Positions 43,884-59,500 of a stretch of 64,000 nucleotides of DNA are shown piece by piece. The translations under genes and the position numbers were made by a program. The stretch is from assembly GCA_047495785.1 (NCBI GenBank), contig JBLDXI010000032.1, positions 2,728,001-2,792,000 of the forward strand. Reading direction: 5' to 3'. Each line of letters begins with the position of its first letter. Within the stretch, counting starts at the first letter, position 1. The stretch comes from Lepidodermella squamata (Eukaryota > Animalia > Gastrotricha). The notes beneath the pieces were generated by a model that saw only the letters and a program-made list of their open reading frames with translations, made no database searches and was not told the DNA's origin.

Positions 43884-45112
43884 ATGCCCAGTTCAATCCT
43901 CTTAATAATATGCTGCATTCTACCTGGCGTCATTTCAGCTAATGACGAAGAAAAACACGAAGAGTCAATAATTCAAAATCCGTTGCTCTGCGACCCATTC
44001 GCTCGCTCGAATAAAACAGTCGAAATCAAGGCAAAGTTCCGGTTTTACAATTTCGACGAAATCGAAGATATCAGCCAGACGGTGGCTGTGAAGGCGAATC
44101 TTGTCATGAGCTGGCTTGACGGTTGCTACTACAGAATTGCTAGGCAATTATGGCCTTATTTCAACGAGAGCTCATCAGGATCGCCGATTTACCTAACAAT
44201 CGACGGCGCTTACGCTATTCAAATGTGGAAACCTAAGTTGGTATTCATGAACAGCGCGACCGAGTCGATACTTGTCGTAGATGAAAACATGGCCGGGTAT
44301 CCTATCGGCGTTTATTCAGACGGAACTGTGATCACGAATGCAGGCGGGCTTTGGCGAGCAAAATGTTCCATGAACCACGAATTGTTCCCCTTCGACACTC
44401 AACGATGCGATTTCGTCTTCGAAATGTGGCTACACGATCGGCTAACCAACCTGAGCAGCGTTAAAGTCGAGTATCTCAGCGCGAATAAGGTGATAACGCA
44501 AAAAACAGACCATTGGGCCTTTGTCAGTGCCAATGCTGAAGTTCACGCCGATGAGTGTTTTACCCTATCAGATGGAAATGAAGTTCAGTGTTGGTCTAAA
44601 ATGACTGTAACGCTTGATATGAAGCGTATCTGGGTGCCTTACGTCTTCACAATAATAGTGCCAACCATTTCGCTAACTGTCCTTCAATTATCCATCCTAG
44701 CAATGCCAGCTAGAATGCCAGATAGACCGGTAAAATGTTCGGGTTTTTTTGGAAATTGTTCAATATAATTTTTCAGGTGTTTTCAACGACATTACTATTG
44801 GCTTTCGTTATTTTACAAACTGATACTCGCCGAAGCATTCCCGATTCAGCAGTTGTAGTCGCCTTATTGGTCTACTTCAATGTGAATATAGCCTCGAGCA
44901 CGCTCATGTGCATCTACGTCACGTTTATGGTCGGCGTTTATGACCATCTGAAGGAGACTGGCCAAAACAAGAGCTCTCACCTGCTAAGCAAAGGCTTTTT
45001 CAAGGGTCTGACCATGTCGCGGCAATGTGATTTTTTTGCTTTCTTGTTATTCTTCGTTATCTTTGTGGGCGAACATTTGTACCTGGTCGCACGTGTGAAC
45101 CTCGTGGCGTAA
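43884..45112 (+). CDS. Divergent Cys-loop ligand-gated ion channel subunit, 2 exons
   Basis: CSMNHELFPFDTQRC; WKP; intron ~44730-44776 at DRP|VFSTT; 4 TM. Confidence 0.88.
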
Positions 45113-45590
45113 TAGATAAACTTTGTTGTTGATATACTTTTTAGACTTATAGGAGCCACATGGCGAAGCTACACCAGTTTTGAATAAATAAACGTTTGAG
45201 AATAAATCTTTTTCTTTCGCTGGCTCGAACGGTTGATCCGCTTTTCTACGCTTCTTCCAAACAAATAAAAGTAGTGCTTCATCCTGAATATTTGCTCATC
45301 TTCTTTTTGCTTTCAAGTTTTAACGAACAATGTTCATATCAGGAATTGATCTACTTTTTCCAATTTGAGGTTGATGCTCGCAAAATTGGGTAAAATTGAA
45401 ATTTCTTATGCTCACGAAATAGGTAGAGGGCTCGAAATTAAGAGTGACAGTTGGAAGAAGTCCTACTGTTAATGGCATCTGATTAAGGCTGATTTTTCAT
45501 TATTTCTTCTTTCTCACTTCCTTGAATTTGTTAACTTTTCAGCTTCTTCAAATTATTTTTGTTTTTTTCCGAAATTTTTCATAGTAGCCA

Positions 45591-46769
45591 ATGACTGACG
45601 TCCCATCACAACTTCCGGTCACGTACTACCGGCGTCCTCTGCCTCCAAACTTGATATCTTTCTCCTCGGATCTTGGACGGCAATACTTTAAAGAATCCTT
45701 AGCTCAAGGTTACGCCGAGGGTTACTTCGACCTGGTCGAGAACTTTACAACCCAGTCTGAACCAGCCTTTTGCGGTCTTGGATCCCTTTCGATGGTGCTA
45801 AATGCCTTGGAGGTCGACCCAGGTCGAGTTTGGAAAGGAGTCTGGCGGTGGTATGCCGATGAAATGCTAGACTGCTGCGTGCCAATTGACGTTATCAAGC
45901 AGAAGGGCATCACCCTGGCTGAATTCATCTGCCTAGCAAAATGCAACGGCCTCCAGGTTGACGCTCATCGATTCGACGAAACAACAAAACAGCAGTTTGT
46001 TAACGATCTCAAGTCGGCAACTTCGAGTCGGAATAAACACGTTGTAGTGTCGTACTCGAGGAAGGGCTTGAAACAAACTGGCGATGGCCATTACTCCCCG
46101 ATAGGTTGCTTCAATGAAGAAAGAGCTTCCGCATTAGTTCTAGACGTTGCACGATTCAAATACCCTTCTTACTGGGCGACAGTTGATCAACTTTGGTATA
46201 TAACATTATCAAATCATTGAGTAAATTGTTAAAGAATTTTTTAAAGGGATGCAATGGCACCTCCTGATAGCGAAACCGGTCGGCCTCGAGGGTACTTTGT
46301 CCTCTCGAAAATCGAACATCCGAAAGGCTACTCGCGAGACCCGACCAAGGGCGGTTTGACATTTGAAGACGCCAAATGTTTCGCTAAGTGCAACGGATTA
46401 GATCTGATCGAACGCTTGACGAGTGAAATTTCAAAGGAGGAATTTCTGGCTGATCTCAAATCAGTGACATGCTCGTCGAAAAAACAGATAATGATCCGTT
46501 CCGGCGAATTTTTCCTACCTGTTTGTTGCGTTAATGGCGATCGCGTGTTGCTGGCCAACATCGAAGAGACAAGCAGTGCCTGTGACACTTGGACTACTGC
46601 TGACCACCTATGGTAAAAGTTCTGATACTTTCGATTAAATAATTAAATAAAAATTTATTTCCTCACTAATTTCAGGTCAGAACTGCAATCAAACAAAAGC
46701 TTGCCTGTTGGCTATTTATTACTGCAAAAGCAGCTTTGCAATTGTAAATCTTGCTCAAAATCGCTTTGA
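45591..46769 (+). CDS. PCS: Phytochelatin synthase (glutathione gamma-glutamylcysteinyltransferase), 3 exons
   Basis: YYRRPLP, TQSEPAFCGL (catalytic Cys), WKGVWRWY, QTGDGHYSP (His), LDVARFKYP (Asp). Exons 45591-46195, 46247-46612, 46676-46769; ends CNCKSC. Confidence 0.95.
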
Positions 46770-46931
46770 TTATCGACGATTCACATTTTTTAGAAAATAA
46801 ATCAGCACGCACGAGAGGAAATTCGAAATTGAACAGCAACACTTGTCAAACAATTTTTCAATATCCTGTTTAGAGCAAAATCCTGATCTGACGTTAGATT
46901 TTTCCACTACATTTCTTTGTAAAAAATCGAA

Positions 46932-48134
46932 ATGATTTATAGAGCTATAGTCTTGCTGATTTTATGGACTTCACCAGCAGGCTCTGTGATGACATCGAAA
47001 GACCGAATTAAATTTATCGATGGTCTTCCACAGGGTAACATTAGAACGGCTCGAGATCTGCTGCGAAAGTGTCCGAACTTCTCGCCCGAGCTTGTCGCGC
47101 CCTTCCCGGATGATATTTTAAACATTTCAGTCCACGTTGAAATTTATCGATTCAACAGCATCGACGCTGTATCTGAGACTTTGTCAATTAATGGCGACAT
47201 CCAAATAAGCTGGAGGGCTGATTGTTCGAATTTAACGGCTTTCTTCGATGAGCAAGAGAAAAGTCTGTTCTACGTCGAGCCAACCAGTGACGTTTGGCGG
47301 CCTAGAATGGTATTTGTCAACGGCAAACAGGCTATGTTCAGATTTGCTGGCCTGTCAGAGATGCTTCGGGTGCAAATTATACCCTTTCATCGGGGCTACG
47401 GCAGGTCGCTGATCGATTTTACGTGGCACCTGATCGGCGAATTTATTTTCAAATGCCCACTTAATCTGCAAAGATTTCCGTCGGATATGCAGCAATGCAG
47501 CGGGAAAATTCGAACCCTTGAGCCCTATGTAACATCAATCGCTCATCTTACGGTATGGCGAGACCCCAATTTCATGGCTAACAATAATGAGTTCAGTTTT
47601 CTGGGCATTTACAAGGCTATTAAAGAGGGGCCTAATGATACCTCAATGGCTGAATTCGGCATAGCTGTTGAACGACGGCCTGATTTCTACCTGATGCATC
47701 TAATATTTCCGTGTTTAATCCTCGCCGTAGTAGAAATGGCAAGTTTTTTCTTGCCGCCGCAACAAGCTGATAGAACAGCTTTCACCATGGCGATTTATCT
47801 CGCTTTCAGCGTTCTCGAGGTCCAACTGTTAGCGTTCATCCCTCTGAGCACGAAGCGCATTGTCCTGGCTGAATTCATAGTATTTCAGTCAGTTTTCAGC
47901 ATGCTGATAACGTTTAATTCAGCTGTGATGTGTTACTACACGAACAACTACGATGGATCAACCGAAATTTTAACGAAATTTCGCCGTTTCCTGCGCTGCT
48001 TCAATGGCTGGCAGCGGCATCGGTTCATTGATTTTTCAGCTTTCGTCGTATTTTTGTTAATTCTTTTTACGGCAACGTGCTACTTTTTGTTCAATATTTT
48101 GCTGGATGAACAACCGCTGAATCTGAGTGCATAA
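46932..48134 (+). CDS. Divergent Cys-loop ligand-gated ion channel subunit (intronless)
   Basis: CPLNLQRFPSDMQQC; paralogue of 36975 and 52625. Confidence 0.9.
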   Translation: MIYRAIVLLILWTSPAGSVMTSKDRIKFIDGLPQGNIRTARDLLRKCPNFSPELVAPFPDDILNISVHVEIYRFNSIDAVSETLSINGDIQISWRADCSNLTAFFDEQEKSLFYVEPTSDVWRPRMVFVNGKQAMFRFAGLSEMLRVQIIPFHRGYGRSLIDFTWHLIGEFIFKCPLNLQRFPSDMQQCSGKIRTLEPYVTSIAHLTVWRDPNFMANNNEFSFLGIYKAIKEGPNDTSMAEFGIAVERRPDFYLMHLIFPCLILAVVEMASFFLPPQQADRTAFTMAIYLAFSVLEVQLLAFIPLSTKRIVLAEFIVFQSVFSMLITFNSAVMCYYTNNYDGSTEILTKFRRFLRCFNGWQRHRFIDFSAFVVFLLILFTATCYFLFNILLDEQPLNLSA

Positions 48135-51355: not shown

Positions 51356-52539
51356 ATGAAGATTCCAGAAATATTGCATTTAATAATTTCTCTCGTGCGA
51401 TTTGGGAGCGCTTTCGTGACTGAAGAAGGCGCGGTGATGGCGCAACTTCGAGATCAATGCTGGGAAGAACGCCACCTTCGACCTGTGCGATACCACAACA
51501 CCACCCTTATGGCCCGCTTTCAATTCAACCCACTTAGATTTATTAACCTTGACGAAATCGAGCAACAGTTGTCATTCAACACTAGATTTTCTATGTTCTG
51601 GAACAACTTTTGCCTTAAGGAAGCGTGGCCTGTTAACACGACTAACATCAGCCAAATTTTGATCCCGGCGAGTGGATTCTGGCTTCCAGAAGTTCTTCAT
51701 GTCACTTCAGTTGGCGATGTGTTGCTAACAACAAGGTAAAAAATAATTGCCCATTTTAATCAACAAAAATTCAAATTTTGTACAGCCAATCGGAAAACAG
51801 CTACCTTAATTTATATTCGGATGGAACCATTAAATGGACGAATAATTTGCGATTTGACGCGTTTTGTGGGCTGAAAATGTGGAACTACCCTTACGACACC
51901 CAAGTATGCCGAATTAAATTCGAGTATCTAAATGACGATAAACTGGTGAATTCAACAATTGCACGCGCTTTCCTCTACAACGACTTCATTTCACCGTCAA
52001 GTGTCTGGAACCAACCTACCATAAATGCTAGCTTGGAGACAAAGACCTACGACTCATTGCCAGGGTTAAAATTTCGCCAGCCGACTTTCACGCTGACATT
52101 TGAGCGGAAAAGTAACCAGTACCTCGTGAATCTTGTTATCCCATCTCTAGCTCTAATGATCCTGCAACTGGCCTTTGTCCTCATGCCGCCGAATGAAACG
52201 AATCGAGTTCTATTCTCGGCTACGATGCTGATGACCTTCCTAATTCTTCTCACGGTTTTATCCACCCAAATGCCGAATACATCCGAAACTGTTCTGATAA
52301 TGGTCTTCATAACTGCGCAACTTTTCATTGGCGCCTCGGCAACCATCTACGCCCTAGCCGCTAACATGGCAGCTACGTCCAATCCCCACTTGACGAAGAA
52401 GAAGTACGGCTGCAAATGCTGGGGCAACCGCGAAATTTCCGTTCTACGCCTCTGCGATATTGTTGTTTTCAGCGCTTTGCTTTTTATTTGCGTTGCTTCG
52501 TTCCTTGGAACGTTTTTGCCGATGATTTACGGCAGATAG
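51356..52539 (+). CDS. Divergent Cys-loop ligand-gated ion channel subunit, 2 exons
   Basis: LRPVRY, FWLPE, CGLKMWNYPYDTQVC, 4 TM; intron ~51736-51785. Confidence 0.9.
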
Positions 52540-52624: not shown

Positions 52625-53866
52625 ATGCGAGTTCATAAAATGCTTCTGGAAATTTTTCTTCTGCTCGCGGTAACAGAGCTGGCTCATGGCCAGCCGCCGC
52701 CTCCTAAAATGAACGCGAAGCAATACATTAAGCAGATGAGGCTCACTCCACGTGGCAACATCACGTCAGCCTATGAGTTGCTGAAAAGATGCCCAAATTT
52801 CGCCCCTGAGCTGATTAGCCCTGTTAAAGATGATACGTTGAACCTTTCCGTTCACTTCGAGGCTTACCGATTCAATGGAATTGATGACGTCAGTGAAACT
52901 ATCTCGCTAAATGGAGCACTCGTCATTAATTGGCTAGCAGATTGTGATAATGCTAAAGCATTTGAGGGTGAGACGGACAATAGCCGATTCTACGCCGAGC
53001 CGACGAATCAGTTATGGAGGCCTCGCATGGTCTTCGGAAACACCAAACAAGCGATGTTACGGTACGCCGGTATGTCAGAGATCCTTCTAGTTTCGATCAA
53101 TCCTTACCATGTTGGCTACGGCAAGCCCTATATTGCGTTCTCGTGGTCTATAATCGGCGAATTCGTCTTCGCATGCCCCCTGAGCCTCCAACACTTCCCG
53201 TCTGACATGCAGCAATGCGGCGGGAAGCTTCGAACGCTGGAACCAAACGCTTTAATGAACATCACTGAGATGCATATGTCATTTGATAGAGGATTCATGC
53301 AAGACAACAATCAGTACGTTCTTCTTGCGACTAGCAGCTCCACTTCGATCGGTCCTTACTTAAGTTCCATGTGCGAATTTCAGTTGGCTTTAGAAAGACA
53401 ACCAGAATTTTTCCTAATGCATCTGATGACGCCCTGCTTCATCCTCGCCACTATGGAAATGGCTAGTTTCTTTTTGCCCCCACAAGAGGTTGATAGGACT
53501 GCATTCACCATGGCGATTTTTCTAGCATTTAGCGTTTTAGAGACAGAGCTGATTGCAATGATACCTCGATCTCCGAAACGAATCTACCTGGCTGAATACA
53601 TTATTTTCCAATCTGTCTTCAGTATGTTGATAACATTCAACTCAGCCATCATGTGCTACTACACGGTCAACTACCCTGTGTCAGCGGAGACAGCTTACAA
53701 ATCTGCATGTTTCAAAGGCTGGAAGCGCCATCGGGTTATTGATCTTGCAGCGTTGATAGCGTTTGGTATCGTCCTCCTGGCAGGAACTTGTTATTTCCTG
53801 ATAAATATTCTACTCGAGGAAACACCCCTCGATATGAAGGGGCGACTTGAAACTTTCACCCGGTAG
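52625..53866 (+). CDS. Divergent Cys-loop ligand-gated ion channel subunit (intronless)
   Basis: CPLSLQHFPSDMQQC; start may be ATG 52640; 4 TM. Confidence 0.9.
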   Translation: MRVHKMLLEIFLLLAVTELAHGQPPPPKMNAKQYIKQMRLTPRGNITSAYELLKRCPNFAPELISPVKDDTLNLSVHFEAYRFNGIDDVSETISLNGALVINWLADCDNAKAFEGETDNSRFYAEPTNQLWRPRMVFGNTKQAMLRYAGMSEILLVSINPYHVGYGKPYIAFSWSIIGEFVFACPLSLQHFPSDMQQCGGKLRTLEPNALMNITEMHMSFDRGFMQDNNQYVLLATSSSTSIGPYLSSMCEFQLALERQPEFFLMHLMTPCFILATMEMASFFLPPQEVDRTAFTMAIFLAFSVLETELIAMIPRSPKRIYLAEYIIFQSVFSMLITFNSAIMCYYTVNYPVSAETAYKSACFKGWKRHRVIDLAALIAFGIVLLAGTCYFLINILLEETPLDMKGRLETFTR

Positions 53867-54346
53867 TTTCGTACTATGTGTTCGTTCTGGTGTCCGCACC
53901 CGTTTTGCGCTCGCTGGCCTGCGTCGCGCCCGTCATGACCTTTTACTGTGCGCAGTTTTATTACCCAGTGATAGATTAATTTGCCTTCAAACGAGGCTAA
54001 CGTAAAACTGACGAGTCCAACCTATCGTTTTGGTGAATTTAGGCAATTTTAGTATATTTTTCTTAGTCTACCTAATGATAAAGCATGTTGTCCTGATAAA
54101 AAAATAAAATTCGTTTCTTACATGTAAATGCTATCCTTAAGTCTTTTTGAATATTACAAAAAAGTGGCACTCGCTATTCATCAAATATGCCGACGGCTTA
54201 TTTTATATTCACAACATCGCGCATTACTGCGCTACTACTATAACACGATATAATAATAATCCTGCTGATATACTAGTAGAGTTGCCGAGAAAAAATCGAT
54301 GAATTTACGCTGAAAGAGGGATAGCAGCCGTCATTAATGAGGAACG

Positions 54347-56384
54347 ATGAAACTGTTTTTTCCACGTTGCCTGCTCGTTTCTCGCATTTTCAAGACTAAA
54401 ATTAATCGAAGCGAGCAATTTTCGACTTATTTAAGCAACCTGGCTCGAGTTATGGAAAAACACGGCGAGCTGACCAGCTACTACCGCCGCCCTCTACCTC
54501 CTAATTTGATCTCTTTTTCCTCGGATCTTGGACGGCAATACTTTAAGGAAGCCTTAGCTCAAGGTTACGCCGAGGGTTACTTCGACCTGGTCGAAAACTT
54601 TACAACGCAATCTGAACCAGCCTTCTGCGGTCTTGGATCCCTTTCGATGGTGCTCAATGCCTTAGAAGTCGACCCAGGTCGAGTTTGGAAGGGAGTCTGG
54701 CGGTGGTACGCCGATGAAATGTTAGACTGCTGCGTTCCGATAGAAACCGTTAAGCAGAAGGGCATCACCCTGGCTGAATTCATCTGCCTAGCGAAGTGCA
54801 ACGGCCTCAATGTAACGGCGCATCGATACGACAAAGCAACGAAGCAGCAATTCCTCAACGATTTAAAGGACGCGACTTCGAGTAGAAACAAACACCTTGT
54901 TGTGTCGTATTCACGTCAAGCTTTACAACAAACTGGAGACGGCCATTACTCCCCAATCGGTTGTTTCAATGTGGAAAGGAATTCAGCTCTTGTCCTCGAT
55001 GTCGCTCGGTTCAAATACACTAGAAAAAAATAACCCCTGATAAGGGGTCTGATCAGGGGTCATAGCTCCTAGTCATTAGTATAGCTGATCAGGGGGTAAT
55101 ATGCACCCTGATCAGGGGTTATATTGAAATGAACCCTAATCAGCTCACCCTGATGAGGGGTCATTTTGCTTCCAATATTTGCTGATAATAATCACCTTTA
55201 GCGCCCCTAATCAGCTGCTGATCAGCAAATTTAGTAAAATTTCAAAATTTTTAGAAAAATGGCAGCCCTTTTCATTTTTATTTTTATATTATTTTTTTTG
55301 AATAGCCGGTTGATCAAGATTCGCCCACCCTGGTGCCATCCATGCCATCGGTGGTATGGTATGCCACCGGACGCGGCAACTACCTAAACATGGCAGGGTC
55401 TCATGATGGCATTTGGTAGAGCCACTTGTTAGGGAGAGAAGGACTTATTGCTAAGTAAATAGGTGAAGTAATAGAGTTCGCGTGTGAAACAATACTATTT
55501 TTTGAAAATATGGACCTTCCGACGCAAGCCTGAATTGAACATGCAGTCTAATTTGCATATGCACGCTTGGTTAATTAGCGAATGCACACTTTTGACCCCT
55601 GATCAGCCAAGTCATGCTGATCAGCATGAAATGACATGGATTATCAGCTGGCGACTGTTGATTATCAGGGGTTGTCCCTTTTTCGTCCTGATCAGCAAAA
55701 TGGTTTAAACAGCTGACCCCTGATCAGGGGTTAATTTTTTCCAGTGTACCCGTCTTATTGGGCTACTTTAGACCAGCTATGGTAACACTCCTAAAGCCTC
55801 TAAAGTAAGACTACATATTTTCCAATTTACAGGGATGCCATGGCGCCACCTGATAGTGAGACGAAACTTCCTAGGGGCTATTTTGTCCTGTCAAAGCGTC
55901 AGTTTTGCGTTAGGGCAGCATTACAAAGTGGCTTAACTATGGATGACGTCATATGCTTCGCGAAATGTAACGGCCTCGACGTATCAGTTCGTGAAAAGAG
56001 CGCATTAACTAAGCAGTTCTTTCTCGAAGACCTGATCTCGGCTGTATCTTCGGGGAGGGAGCAAATTATGGTTCGCTACAACGGCTTCTTCACGCCCATC
56101 GGAGGGCTGAAGGAAAGCAGCCATGTCATGCTAGCTGACATCCATCAAAATGGAGCCCAACAGCATTGGGTCGCCTTGGATGATTTATGGTATGGTAAAT
56201 TCTGAAGAACCGTCAATCTTTAGTTGCTTGTTTTGCTAGGAATGAAATGGAATCGCTCGATCCTGATGAAGACCTGCCTTGTGGATATTTGATCCTGATC
56301 AAGCAAACGTGTGATTGCAAATCATGTGCTAACCCGGTTGACAAATTGCCTGCCCTGTGTCCAGCTCCAGCTCTTTCTCAATAA
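54347..56384 (+). pseudogene. PCS: Second phytochelatin synthase, interrupted in exon 1 by a CACTA-like element
   Basis: Catalytic region near-identical to PCS1 up to ARFKY; insertion 55018-55746; resumes (Y)PSYWATLDQLW; introns 55782-55832 and 56190-56239; ends CDCKSC...SQ* at 56384. Start ATG 54347 or 54452. Confidence 0.88.
55018..55746. mobile_element. Non-autonomous CACTA/EnSpm (CMC)-like DNA transposon, 729 bp
   Basis: TIRs CACTAGAAAAAAATAACCCCTGATAAGGGGTC / CACTGGAAAAAATTAACCCCTGATCAGGGGTC (3 mismatches in 32); 2-bp TA duplication at 55016-17 and 55747-48; many subterminal CTGATCAG palindromes. Confidence 0.9.
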
Positions 56385-56501
56385 CAATCCTTATCACTGT
56401 AAACGTTCTCTAGATCTCAACTTGCACGCTAGTTTTACAATGTATCTCTTTCAATCGCTAATGTGGTATTTTATTTAAATAAAGAAACGGAGTAAATTTT
56501 T

Positions 56502-59500
56502 TCATCCTGATGTGCAGATCGTTATCAGACATCCAGTTCTGTCGGCTCCTTTCTCAATCAAAATCCTTATTGCGTTCATATTGGCGTCTGGTCTCGAAGC
56601 AGCCCAACTTAAAGCACTGACGTTGTTATCCGACTTATTGTTTATATTCGCTCCAGCGTCGATGAGGATTTTCAGCAGCTCCACTTTGTTGAGAAAGGCA
56701 CTCCAAGATAACGCCGTTCGACCCATTGAATCACGCTGTTCCACGTTAGCTCCGCGTTCAATCAATAACTGAACGATCTTCTCGGCATTTTGCGATGCAT
56801 TAATCACAGCAGCATGAAGAGCAGATAGACCCATGTTTGTCGCAGCGCTAATGTTCGCACCTCGATTTAGCAAAGACCTAACAGCGTCAAATTTGCCACT
56901 TCGAGCCGCGAAGATCAGCGCAGTTTCGCCGTCAATGTTCTTCATCTCCATTTCTGCGCCACTTTCCAGCAGCAATCGCAAGGAAGGTACATTCCCGTTC
57001 TCCGCAGCCATCATCAGTGCTGAATCGCCGTTTGTTGCTTCTTGGAAATTTCGATCCGCCCCAGCTTCAACCAGCTGACGGACAATGTCGATGTTAGCAT
57101 TACAAGCTGTTGCCTTATGAAGTGCTGAAGCCAATGTCATCGTCCGGTTGTTTCGACATGAACTAAAGGGAATAGGGTCTCGCCAATCCACGTCGAAGGC
57201 AACCCCGCTGTAACGAAGGCCTAAGATTCGCGTGACTTCATTCGAATTCCCGCTAGCAGCCGCTCTATGCAGCATCATGTTATAATCATCAGACGGCATA
57301 ATAGCAATTCTCTGAGTTGTAGTAGTAGTTGTGGAAGTGGTCGTAGCAGGAAGAGTTCTAGCAAGCGGTCGGCAGATACCAGGCGTGGACCATTCGCCAG
57401 TTGCGAGGCAGGTCAAGTTAGCCGCTCCTAGAATCTGAAATCCAGTCCTGCAAACCAGTGTGCGAGTTGCACCGACGCTAAAATTTGTACTAGCCAACGA
57501 TTCGGGGCTTAAAGAAGCTCCGGATGCGTCCAGCGTGGCTCGAGGAACCTCTCGGCACAAAACCGGGGCCTTCGTTGTAGCTGAGGCTGATTGAGTTGTA
57601 TCAGATTGTTCACAAAACCCAGGCGGCATACTCCATTCTCCATTTGGTTGGCATGTTACCGTGACCTGAGCCTGCCCCATCAGCCTGAAGCCGGGCTTAC
57701 AAGTGAGCATTATAGTCGCCCCAATGCTCGTGTTTGCAGCGGCATATTCGGCATCAGTCACAGCGAAATTTCCAAGATCAAACACGAATTTCGGAGGCAG
57801 CGGACAGCTTGTAATTCTTGGTAGTAGTGTGGTGGCTCGAGGTGTTGTAGCTTCAGGAGCGGCTACGCACATTCCTGGCATAGTCCATTCTCCATTAGGC
57901 TGACACGTTACCGTTACCTGAGCTTGCCCCATCAGTTTGAAACCGGGCTTACAACTAAGAACTTTCGATGCCCCTATGCTGGTGTTCGAAGAGGCATATT
58001 CAGCGTCAGTCACAGCAAAATTTCCAAGATCAAACATGAACTTCGGGGGCAATGGACAGCTTGTGATTTTTGGCGCTGATGTGGTGGCTCGAGGTGTTGT
58101 AGCTTCAGGAGCGGCCACACACATTCCAGGCATAGTCCATTCACCATTCGGCTGGCACGTCACCGTAGATGAACCCATAATCTGGAAACCAGGTTTACAT
58201 GCCAGATACTTTGTAGCTCCGATACTAGTGTTTGCGGATGCATACTCAGCGTCAGTTACCGCAAAATTACCCAGGTCAAATAGAAATTTCGGAGGTAGCA
58301 TACAGTTCATTATCTTTGGTATTGCAGTGCTGGTTCTAGGTATTGCGGTTGTTGCTGCAGCTATCGTTGTAGGCGGGACTGCAGTACACATTCCTGGCAT
58401 GGTCCACTGACCATTCGGTTGGCACACGACTCTCGAAGGACCATTGGCTTGAAATCCTTGTCGGCATTTCAATTCTTTGGTCGCTCCAACAGAGTTATTT
58501 AAAGTTTTATACTCTGCGTCTGACATTTCAAAATTAGCAAAGTCGAACATTGATTTCGGAGGAACTGGACACAGAACGAGCGGCTTTATAGTGGTCACAG
58601 TCGAGGTTAATCCAGCTGTTGTAACTGCAAGTTTGATGGTTGAAGTGGAAGACAGCTGTGTGACTCTAGGAGATGTCTCCGAACCCTGCACGCACATTCC
58701 GGGCATCGTCCACTCACCATTCGCTTGGCATGTTACGCTAGATGGTCCCATTATCTGAAATCCCGGCTTGCAGTTCAGTGTTTTTATCGCTCCGATGCTC
58801 GTGTTTGCAGATGCATATTCAGCATCAGTAACCGCGAAGTTACCCATGTCAAACAGGAATTTAGGAGGTAAAGTGCAGTTCAAAATCTTCGGCTGAGGTA
58901 CTGTGGTCCAAGAAGTACTGGTTCTAGCCGCAGTTGTAGCCGCAGATGGCGTTGTTTGAGATATCGCGCTACACATACCCGGCATGGTCCACTGCCCATT
59001 CTGTTGACAAACCACTCTCGGGGGCCCATTCACTTGAAATCCAGGTTTACATTTCAGCTCCTTAGTCGCCCCTACAGAGTTGTTAAAACTGTTGTAATCT
59101 GCGTCCGTTATCAGAAAATTAGCAAATTCGAACACGGATTTTGGAGGGACTGGACAAAGCACAGGTGCCTTCGTAGTAGTTGAAATGGAGGACGATCTAG
59201 GGGTAGCAGCCTTTGATGTCGACGAAGACTGCGAGACTCGAGAAGTTGTTTCTGTAGCTGGAACACAAAGCCCGGGCAACGTCCATTCTCCATTCGGTTG
59301 ACATCTTACCACAGACGGGCCGACAATTTGGAACCCTGGAAGGCACTGCAGCTCTCTTGATGCCCCGACTGAGGTGTTGGCTGTTTCGTAATCTTCCTCC
59401 GTAACATCGAAGTTTCCTAGCTCAAACAAGATAAACGGAGGTAGAATGCACTGAACAGCTGGTTTAGTGGTTGTTATAGTCGTAACTGGAGCTGATGTCG

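Follow-up and report, generated by a model that had tools for sequence, protein, structure and literature searches.

What stands behind the catalytic domain of a phytochelatin synthase (PCS) when the usual variable C-terminal domain is absent? The question is raised by two genes in a 64,000-nucleotide stretch of the genome of the gastrotrich Lepidodermella squamata (the window). Gene 1 occupies 45591-46769 and gene 2 occupies 54452-56384, both on the + strand. A reading of 44000-47600 and 54300-56520, together with the list of open reading frames, shows animal DNA with short introns and these two PCS genes. The ~105-120 residues behind each catalytic domain are homologous to the second half of the same domain. 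The preferred reading, with a probability of about 75%, is that these are two paralogous animal PCS genes in which an ancient intragenic tandem duplication gave a dead C-terminal half-domain, which has been kept by selection in a stabilising or regulatory role.

The region behind the catalytic domain

Gene 1 has three exons (45591-46195, 46247-46612, and 46676-46769) and encodes 354 amino acids. Both introns have GT..AG ends, and each splits a Trp codon after its second base (TG/G), at 46195 and 46612. Gene 2 has Trp codons split in the same way by GT..AG introns at 55781 and 56189. All four positions had been given by an earlier reading made from the letters alone (the sequence-only reading), and they are confirmed here. 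The features of gene 1 are as follows, with X1 denoting a sequencing run discussed in the next section.

45591-46195, + strand: exon 1, from Met1 to the first two bases of Trp202, encoding most of the PCS catalytic domain (PF05023)
45771-45773, 46089-46091, and 46143-46145, + strand: triad codons Cys61, His167, and Asp185, as aligned to Nostoc Alr0975
45906-46310, + strand: source unit of the duplication, residues ~106-223, the second half of the catalytic domain with intron 1 included (BLASTP self-alignment)
46196-46246, + strand: intron 1, 51 nt, GT..AG, phase 2, within the Trp202 codon; absent from the X1 contig
46247-46612, + strand: exon 2, which supplies the final 21 catalytic-domain residues and continues through a short linker into the body of the predicted dead copy
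46353-46730, + strand: predicted dead duplicate, residues ~238-342, intron 2 included; Phe291 (46512-46514) at the His site, Asn306 at the Asp site, CxxxC kept
46613-46675, + strand: intron 2, 63 nt, GT..AG, phase 2, within the Trp324 codon, at a position homologous to that of intron 1; absent from the X1 contig
46676-46769, + strand: exon 3 in the form with an unspliced tail, encoding the last strand of the copy and then a CxCxxC tail, with the stop at 46767-46769
46744-46793, + strand: third intron, 50 nt, GT..AG; seen in a single RNA-like contig that joins 46743 to 46794, with 23 nt on the far side

The N-terminal domain of both genes appears to be an ordinary and intact PCS catalytic domain, and it is predicted to be active. 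Exon 1 matches PF05023 with 259.9 bits in gene 1 (E 1.6e-77) and 244.7 bits in gene 2, against a gathering cut-off of 24.9 bits. The catalytic exon matches the structures of Nostoc Alr0975 with an E-value of 4e-23. Gene 1 has C61, H167, and D185 within the motifs AFCG, GDGH, and LDVARFKYP, which are aligned with the matching motifs of Alr0975.

The repeat alignments listed for both genes by the sequence-only reading are all present in the sequence, and the self-similarity that it expected is significant. Exon 1 matches exon 2 of the same gene in BLASTP comparisons with E-values of 4e-12 (gene 1) and 3e-15 (gene 2). The spliced models align with themselves at 30% identity over 119 amino acids in gene 1 (E 7e-16) and at 34% over 125 amino acids in gene 2 (E 1e-24). 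In these models, collinearity begins at catalytic residue ~97-106 and extends to the last strand, across both split Trp codons. A chance similarity between the copy and the catalytic half is rejected by these E-values.

Profile comparison, proposed as a check, succeeds outright for gene 2 and falls short of the cut-off for gene 1. The exon 2 peptide of gene 2 matches positions 93-191 of PF05023 (34.9 bits, E 1.2e-8), while that of gene 1 matches positions 94-144 with 22.6 bits (E 6.8e-5). A hidden Markov model (HMM) of the catalytic domain, for which 157 sequences were used, recognises a second domain in both genes; the match covers model positions 95-212 in gene 2 (E 1.4e-17) and positions 95-144 in gene 1 (E 3.5e-8). 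The gene 2 copy also matches the catalytic second halves of the retrieved homologues, with E-values from 1e-16 to ~1e-10 among the best 46 listed. In the ESM Atlas, the clusters nearest to the copy are PCS and C39-like peptidases of the papain clan. The only Pfam match on the copy besides PF05023 is a zinc-finger-like one below threshold, and PF09328 (Phytochelatin_C) is not found there.

Structure prediction points the same way and is consistent with the papain-like subfold that had been suggested. For the exon-encoded body of each copy, the AlphaFold2 model has a mean confidence (pLDDT) of 85.7, and the predicted template modelling scores are 0.70 and 0.73. The model of the gene 2 copy, compared with the PDB by Foldseek, has the Alr0975 chains as its top matches, with template modelling scores of 0.81-0.85, root-mean-square deviations of 2.0-2.6 Å, and a probability of 1.0, and with E-values of only 0.1-0.4.

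The copy lacks most of what makes the domain an enzyme. In an alignment of 52 sequences, it has no counterpart of the Cys-bearing N-terminal half, and 8-9 residues of the nearly invariant loop before the catalytic His are missing. The His itself is replaced by Phe (F291 in gene 1 and F286 in gene 2); the absence of the Cys segment and the change of His to Phe had both been noticed from the letters. Past the catalytic Asp, polar residues stand in place of the nearly invariant, cleft-lining ARFKYP stretch. The Asp is kept in the gene 2 copy and is Asn in the gene 1 copy. The copy is thus predicted to be catalytically dead. Since the duplicated lobe is the half without the nucleophile, it should be unable to form an active-site cleft. 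The fold-core positions are kept, and the nearly invariant CxxxC pair of the family is retained in all four copies, which are those of genes 1 and 2 and of an allele-like pair on another contig (C14). The first Cys of this pair presumably corresponds to Cys109 of AtPCS1, judged by residue numbering and Cys spacing; at that position, the literature gives Lys for Nostoc and the alignment places Arg.

Gene structure and origin of the duplication

The catalytic exon and the copy could in principle come from two different genes, with a fragment of a neighbouring tandem PCS gene lying behind a PCS gene. PCS genes are tandemly multiplied in this genome, and a possible in-frame Met lies just past the acceptor of exon 2. 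An intron-free contig from run X1 (recorded as probable RNA, 2015) speaks against such an artefact of the gene models. It is placed on 46077-46194, 46246-46611, and 46675-46743, and the two skipped segments of 51 and 63 nt have GT..AG ends and fall exactly at the predicted sites. It runs from exon 1 through exon 2 to exon 3 in a continuous frame. Run X2 (2024) includes the introns, as expected of DNA. The data of both runs are contigs, which show splice structure and not expression level. The copy of gene 1 is transcribed in frame with the catalytic exon. Exon 2 also encodes the last strand of the catalytic domain itself, and four gene copies are built in this way. Two separate genes are accordingly a barely credible explanation.

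The contig also bears on the CxCxxC tail described by the sequence-only reading. This tail stands in gene 2 and in the unspliced form of gene 1, but it is mostly removed from gene 1 in the X1 contig. Splicing of 46744-46793 creates a TAA across the junction, so that the isoform ends in ...QLCN and two of the three tail Cys residues are lost. The joint rests on one contig with 23 nt beyond it. Removal of the third intron may be alternative splicing that alters the C-terminus of gene 1, and the CxCxxC tail of gene 1 may be isoform-specific. Gene 2 has no donor site at the equivalent place.

The introns left a marker of how the copy arose. In both genes, the two interrupted Trp residues are aligned with each other, and introns 1 and 2 cut their codons in the same phase. 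In gene 2, homology in the second unit begins only ~3 residues past the end of the first. The matching splits and this spacing indicate a head-to-tail duplication from the middle of exon 1 through the intron into exon 2. An intragenic tandem duplication of ~125 codons, with the intron included and placed directly behind the catalytic domain, is well supported. The internal duplication at the genomic level, proposed from the letters, is borne out by the sequence, the X1 joints, and the aligned split Trp codons.

Unequal recombination between two tandem PCS genes, from the end of one to the middle of the other, would give an end product that looks identical, and the PCS genes here stand in tandem-like blocks. 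It needs a non-homologous junction and the loss of the tail of the first gene, whereas the ~3-residue spacing in gene 2 fits a head-to-tail tandem copy. This route is unlikely. In a maximum-likelihood tree of catalytic halves and copies, the gene 1 and gene 2 copies group in a single clade with support of 100/99. By either route, then, the duplication occurred once, and it predates the split of gene 1 and gene 2. A single event is what this tree topology indicates. The catalytic domains of the two genes differ by a synonymous divergence (dS) of ~1.0-1.4.

Gene 2 has the same architecture, interrupted in the window by a miniature inverted-repeat transposable element (MITE). Its features are the following.

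54452-55017, + strand: first piece of exon 1, encoding the catalytic domain to ...FKY (PF05023); ATG 54452 chosen by analogy, with an in-frame upstream ATG at 54347
55018-55746, + strand: 729-bp MITE within the coding exon; its terminal inverted repeats are 34 nt long, the duplicated TA target lies at 55016-17 and 55747-48, and a stop is introduced in frame
55749-55781, + strand: second piece of exon 1, ending with the TG of the split Trp
55833-56189, + strand: exon for the catalytic tail and the body of the predicted dead copy, with Phe286 for His and Asp302 kept, PF05023 positions 93-191, ending with the TG of the second split Trp
56240-56384, + strand: last exon, in which the final strand of the copy is followed by the CxCxxC motif and a tail of 20 residues

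An intron at 55018-55746 was considered and rejected; the segment lacks GT..AG ends, and its inverted repeats, TA flanks, and stop identify a MITE. The element contains many internal CCTGATCAGGGG-type palindromes and is a non-autonomous terminal-inverted-repeat element. Its family has at least 10 full-length copies in the genome, with 89-98% identity. The nearest copy is 98% identical, which indicates that the family was recently active. The counterpart of gene 2 on C14 has an empty and uninterrupted site. The insertion is recent and confined to one copy of gene 2, and the gene 2 type is otherwise intact. The copy had been described as kept in two paralogues; this holds for the gene 2 type on C14, but gene 2 in the window is broken by the MITE.

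Cys-loop channel-like genes flank both PCS genes, at 43884-45112, 46932-48134, 51356-52539, and 52625-53866. The two blocks of channel and PCS genes look like an old block duplication, with the order channel-PCS-channel in one and channel-channel-PCS in the other.

Comparison with other phytochelatin synthases

The canonical eukaryotic PCS proteins, such as AtPCS1, C. elegans PCS-1, and Schistosoma mansoni PCS, share with the two genes a highly conserved papain-fold PF05023 domain, a Cys-His-Asp triad, and a Cys-containing C-terminal extension. The C-terminal domain of eukaryotic PCS is variable and has no relation to the catalytic one (PMC3561135); in the retrieved PCS proteins, this region looks largely helical. 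The proteins encoded here differ in that this helical variable domain is absent, and the C-terminal region is a predicted dead copy of catalytic positions ~95-212. The prokaryotic half-size PCS of Nostoc, Alr0975 (PDB 2BTW, 2BU3, and 6TH5), is the structural reference for both parts. Unlike them, it consists of the catalytic domain alone, with neither a C-terminal domain nor a repeat.

The closest catalytic domains in a collection of 5.8 billion proteins are at most 65% identical. The named ones are cyanobacterial and fungal (Kickxellales and chytrids), with 51-60% identity in the named chytrid and zygomycete fungi. The closest relative of the catalytic domain (P0001) lies on a eukaryotic contig that carries Nuf2 and dynamin genes. 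Like the two genes here, 10 of 79 long PCS proteins, named chytrid ones among them, have a CxC-type motif within their last 22 residues. The short Cys tail may thus be old and have outlasted the replacement of the remaining C-terminal domain.

No second case of the architecture was found. A HMMER profile of the two copies gives 36 matches at E<=0.001 among 1.84 billion representative proteins (best 5e-8), with one stretch each; all 36 lie within ordinary catalytic domains, and the profile is weak at this database size. The catalytic-domain HMM detects a second catalytic-type domain in none of 156 other PCS proteins, which are mostly fungal, cyanobacterial, and metagenomic. Two apparent exceptions among the 156 are each one domain in two pieces. 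An HMM of the copy shows no similarity to the C-terminal regions of 55 longer homologues, with E >1 throughout. The exon 2 peptide has no match in a word-index protein search, and exon 2 has none in a sequence search of the PDB. A scan of JGI metagenomes with the alignment of the copies gives 173 pattern matches, none of which is confirmed. In the literature, neither a PCS with an internal duplication or tandem domain nor relevant work on PCS of rotifers or gastrotrichs was found. The sequence-only reading had proposed a new PCS architecture, and a catalytic domain with a predicted dead half-domain and then a short Cys tail behind it does appear to be new among the PCS proteins retrieved.

The genome (121 Mb in 151 contigs) has seven PF05023 loci. 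Two of them are the window genes on contig C32, and two form the allele-like pair on C14, in which L006 is of the gene 1 type (~95% identical in amino acids) and L005 of the gene 2 type (95-100%). With a synonymous divergence of 0.05-0.27 from the window pair, the C14 pair, at ~695-703 kb, may represent either a divergent haplotype or a segment that was duplicated recently. The other three loci are divergent PCS-like genes, L009 (C14:301666-302253), L010 (C15:1827520-1828134), and L011 (C3:1409981-1410601). They resemble genes 1 and 2 in their PF05023 matches (E 1e-40 to 1e-43) and in the presence of the Cys, His, and Asp motifs. In contrast, they share only ~25-34% identity with them, have the Pfam match in a single open frame and hydrophobic N- and C-terminal ends, and contain no internal repeat. 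From these ends, their products look secreted or membrane-anchored.

Selection on the copy and its possible role

Could the copy be a decaying relic without function, carried behind an essential catalytic domain? The long-term record gives this idea some ground. Between gene 1 and gene 2, nonsynonymous divergence (dN) is 0.48 in the copy and 0.10 in the catalytic domain, while the synonymous sites of the copy are saturated. The copy has evolved ~5 times faster than the catalytic domain over the long term, and all catalytic features are lost. The copy of gene 1 sits on a very long branch, and its Pfam score stays below the gathering cut-off. The recent record is different. The C32 and C14 versions of each gene, compared by the Nei-Gojobori method, give these values.

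Gene 1 pair, copy: 13 synonymous and 5 nonsynonymous changes, dN/dS 0.098
Gene 2 pair, copy: 19 synonymous and 1 nonsynonymous changes, dN/dS 0.012
Gene 1 pair, catalytic domain: 35 synonymous and 10 nonsynonymous changes, dN/dS 0.074
Gene 2 pair, catalytic domain: 7 synonymous and 0 nonsynonymous changes, dN/dS 0

Nonsynonymous changes in the copy make up 5 of 18 in gene 1 and 1 of 20 in gene 2, compared with a neutral expectation of 78% (P = 8e-6 and 3e-12). The copy is under clear purifying selection today, in agreement with the selection that had been suspected. The frame is open in all four copies despite the saturated synonymous divergence between the paralogues, and the fold-core residues are kept. 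A functionless relic is consequently very improbable. Homology to a neighbouring domain that is predicted active, loss of the catalytic residues, and purifying selection are the marks of a pseudoenzyme domain, and all three are found here. The catalytic part of the gene 2 pair has a dS of 0.048, five times below that of the C-terminal copy (0.24); the low 5' value may reflect gene conversion.

Active domains beside dead homologues that are kept by selection are known from the D1-D2 domains of receptor tyrosine phosphatases and from the kinase-pseudokinase pair of JAK. There, the whole domain was duplicated, and the dead one regulates or stabilises the active one. Here, in contrast, one subdomain of the fold was copied, the half free of the nucleophile.

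The role of the normal C-terminal domain is itself disputed. Metal regulation is ascribed to it, and metal sensing, a second acylation site, and simple stabilisation have all been put forward (PMC3561135). The mechanism proposed here begins with the duplication of the helix-plus-beta-sheet subdomain of the papain fold, which normally carries the His and the Asp. The copy then lost the His, the loop of 8-9 residues, and the ARFKYP stretch. The N-terminal domain would make phytochelatins as usual, and the dead half-domain would stabilise or regulate the enzyme in place of the normal C-terminal domain, to which such a task is ascribed. Binding of metal or metal-thiolate could involve the retained CxxxC pair and the terminal CxCxxC as candidate ligands. 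That the half-domain does the usual C-terminal job, as stabilisation, metal regulation, or both, is a tentative suggestion drawn from sequence features. The sequence-only reading had suggested a metal sensor or an intramolecular dimer mimic, both of which are hypothetical functions.

A purely structural role, as a module for solubility or stability with no part in metal sensing or regulation, is about as likely as this takeover, and as a reading it is equally tentative. The conserved positions are mostly fold-core residues that are common to the catalytic half, and the transcript of gene 1 can drop the Cys tail. In Schistosoma PCS, the catalytic domain alone suffices for phytochelatin synthesis (PMC3561135). 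The retention of CxxxC, and of CxCxxC in gene 2, is less easily explained by structure alone, as are the 8-9 Cys residues in the 131-145 residues of copy and tail.

A more specific idea is that the dead half-domain acts as a decoy partner for the Cys-bearing N-terminal half. Within one enzyme or in a dimer, this half would pair either actively with the His/Asp half or inactively with the Phe copy, and metal at CxxxC or CxCxxC would shift the balance. This is a long shot. If true, duplication of one papain-fold lobe would have created a built-in on/off switch.

Several points weigh against the preferred reading of a selected half-domain with a stabilising or regulatory role. The sole RNA-like contig drops most of the Cys tail of gene 1, which weakens tail-based metal sensing for that gene, and beyond the family-wide CxxxC just three Cys residues are common to the copies of both paralogues. 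The AlphaFold2 models lean to the catalytic fold because the supplied alignments consist mostly of catalytic halves, and they omit the last strand of the copy, which is encoded in the next exon. The attachment of the copy clade among the catalytic halves is flagged as a long-branch join, and the tree gives no lineage or date. The protein sets of relatives are absent from all matches, so "unique" means not seen elsewhere, and not absent from related species. The absence of a second case rests on the profile search and the 156 proteins, and not on named animal PCS proteins taken one by one.

The two genes are a clean case of protein evolution, in which a tandem duplication ran from within one exon across an intron into the following exon and left the intron as a marker. 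They indicate that one lobe of the papain fold can persist without its partner lobe. The C-terminal domain of PCS is replaced here by a part of known origin and predictable fold, which has been kept in two long-diverged paralogues, and this amounts to a natural experiment.

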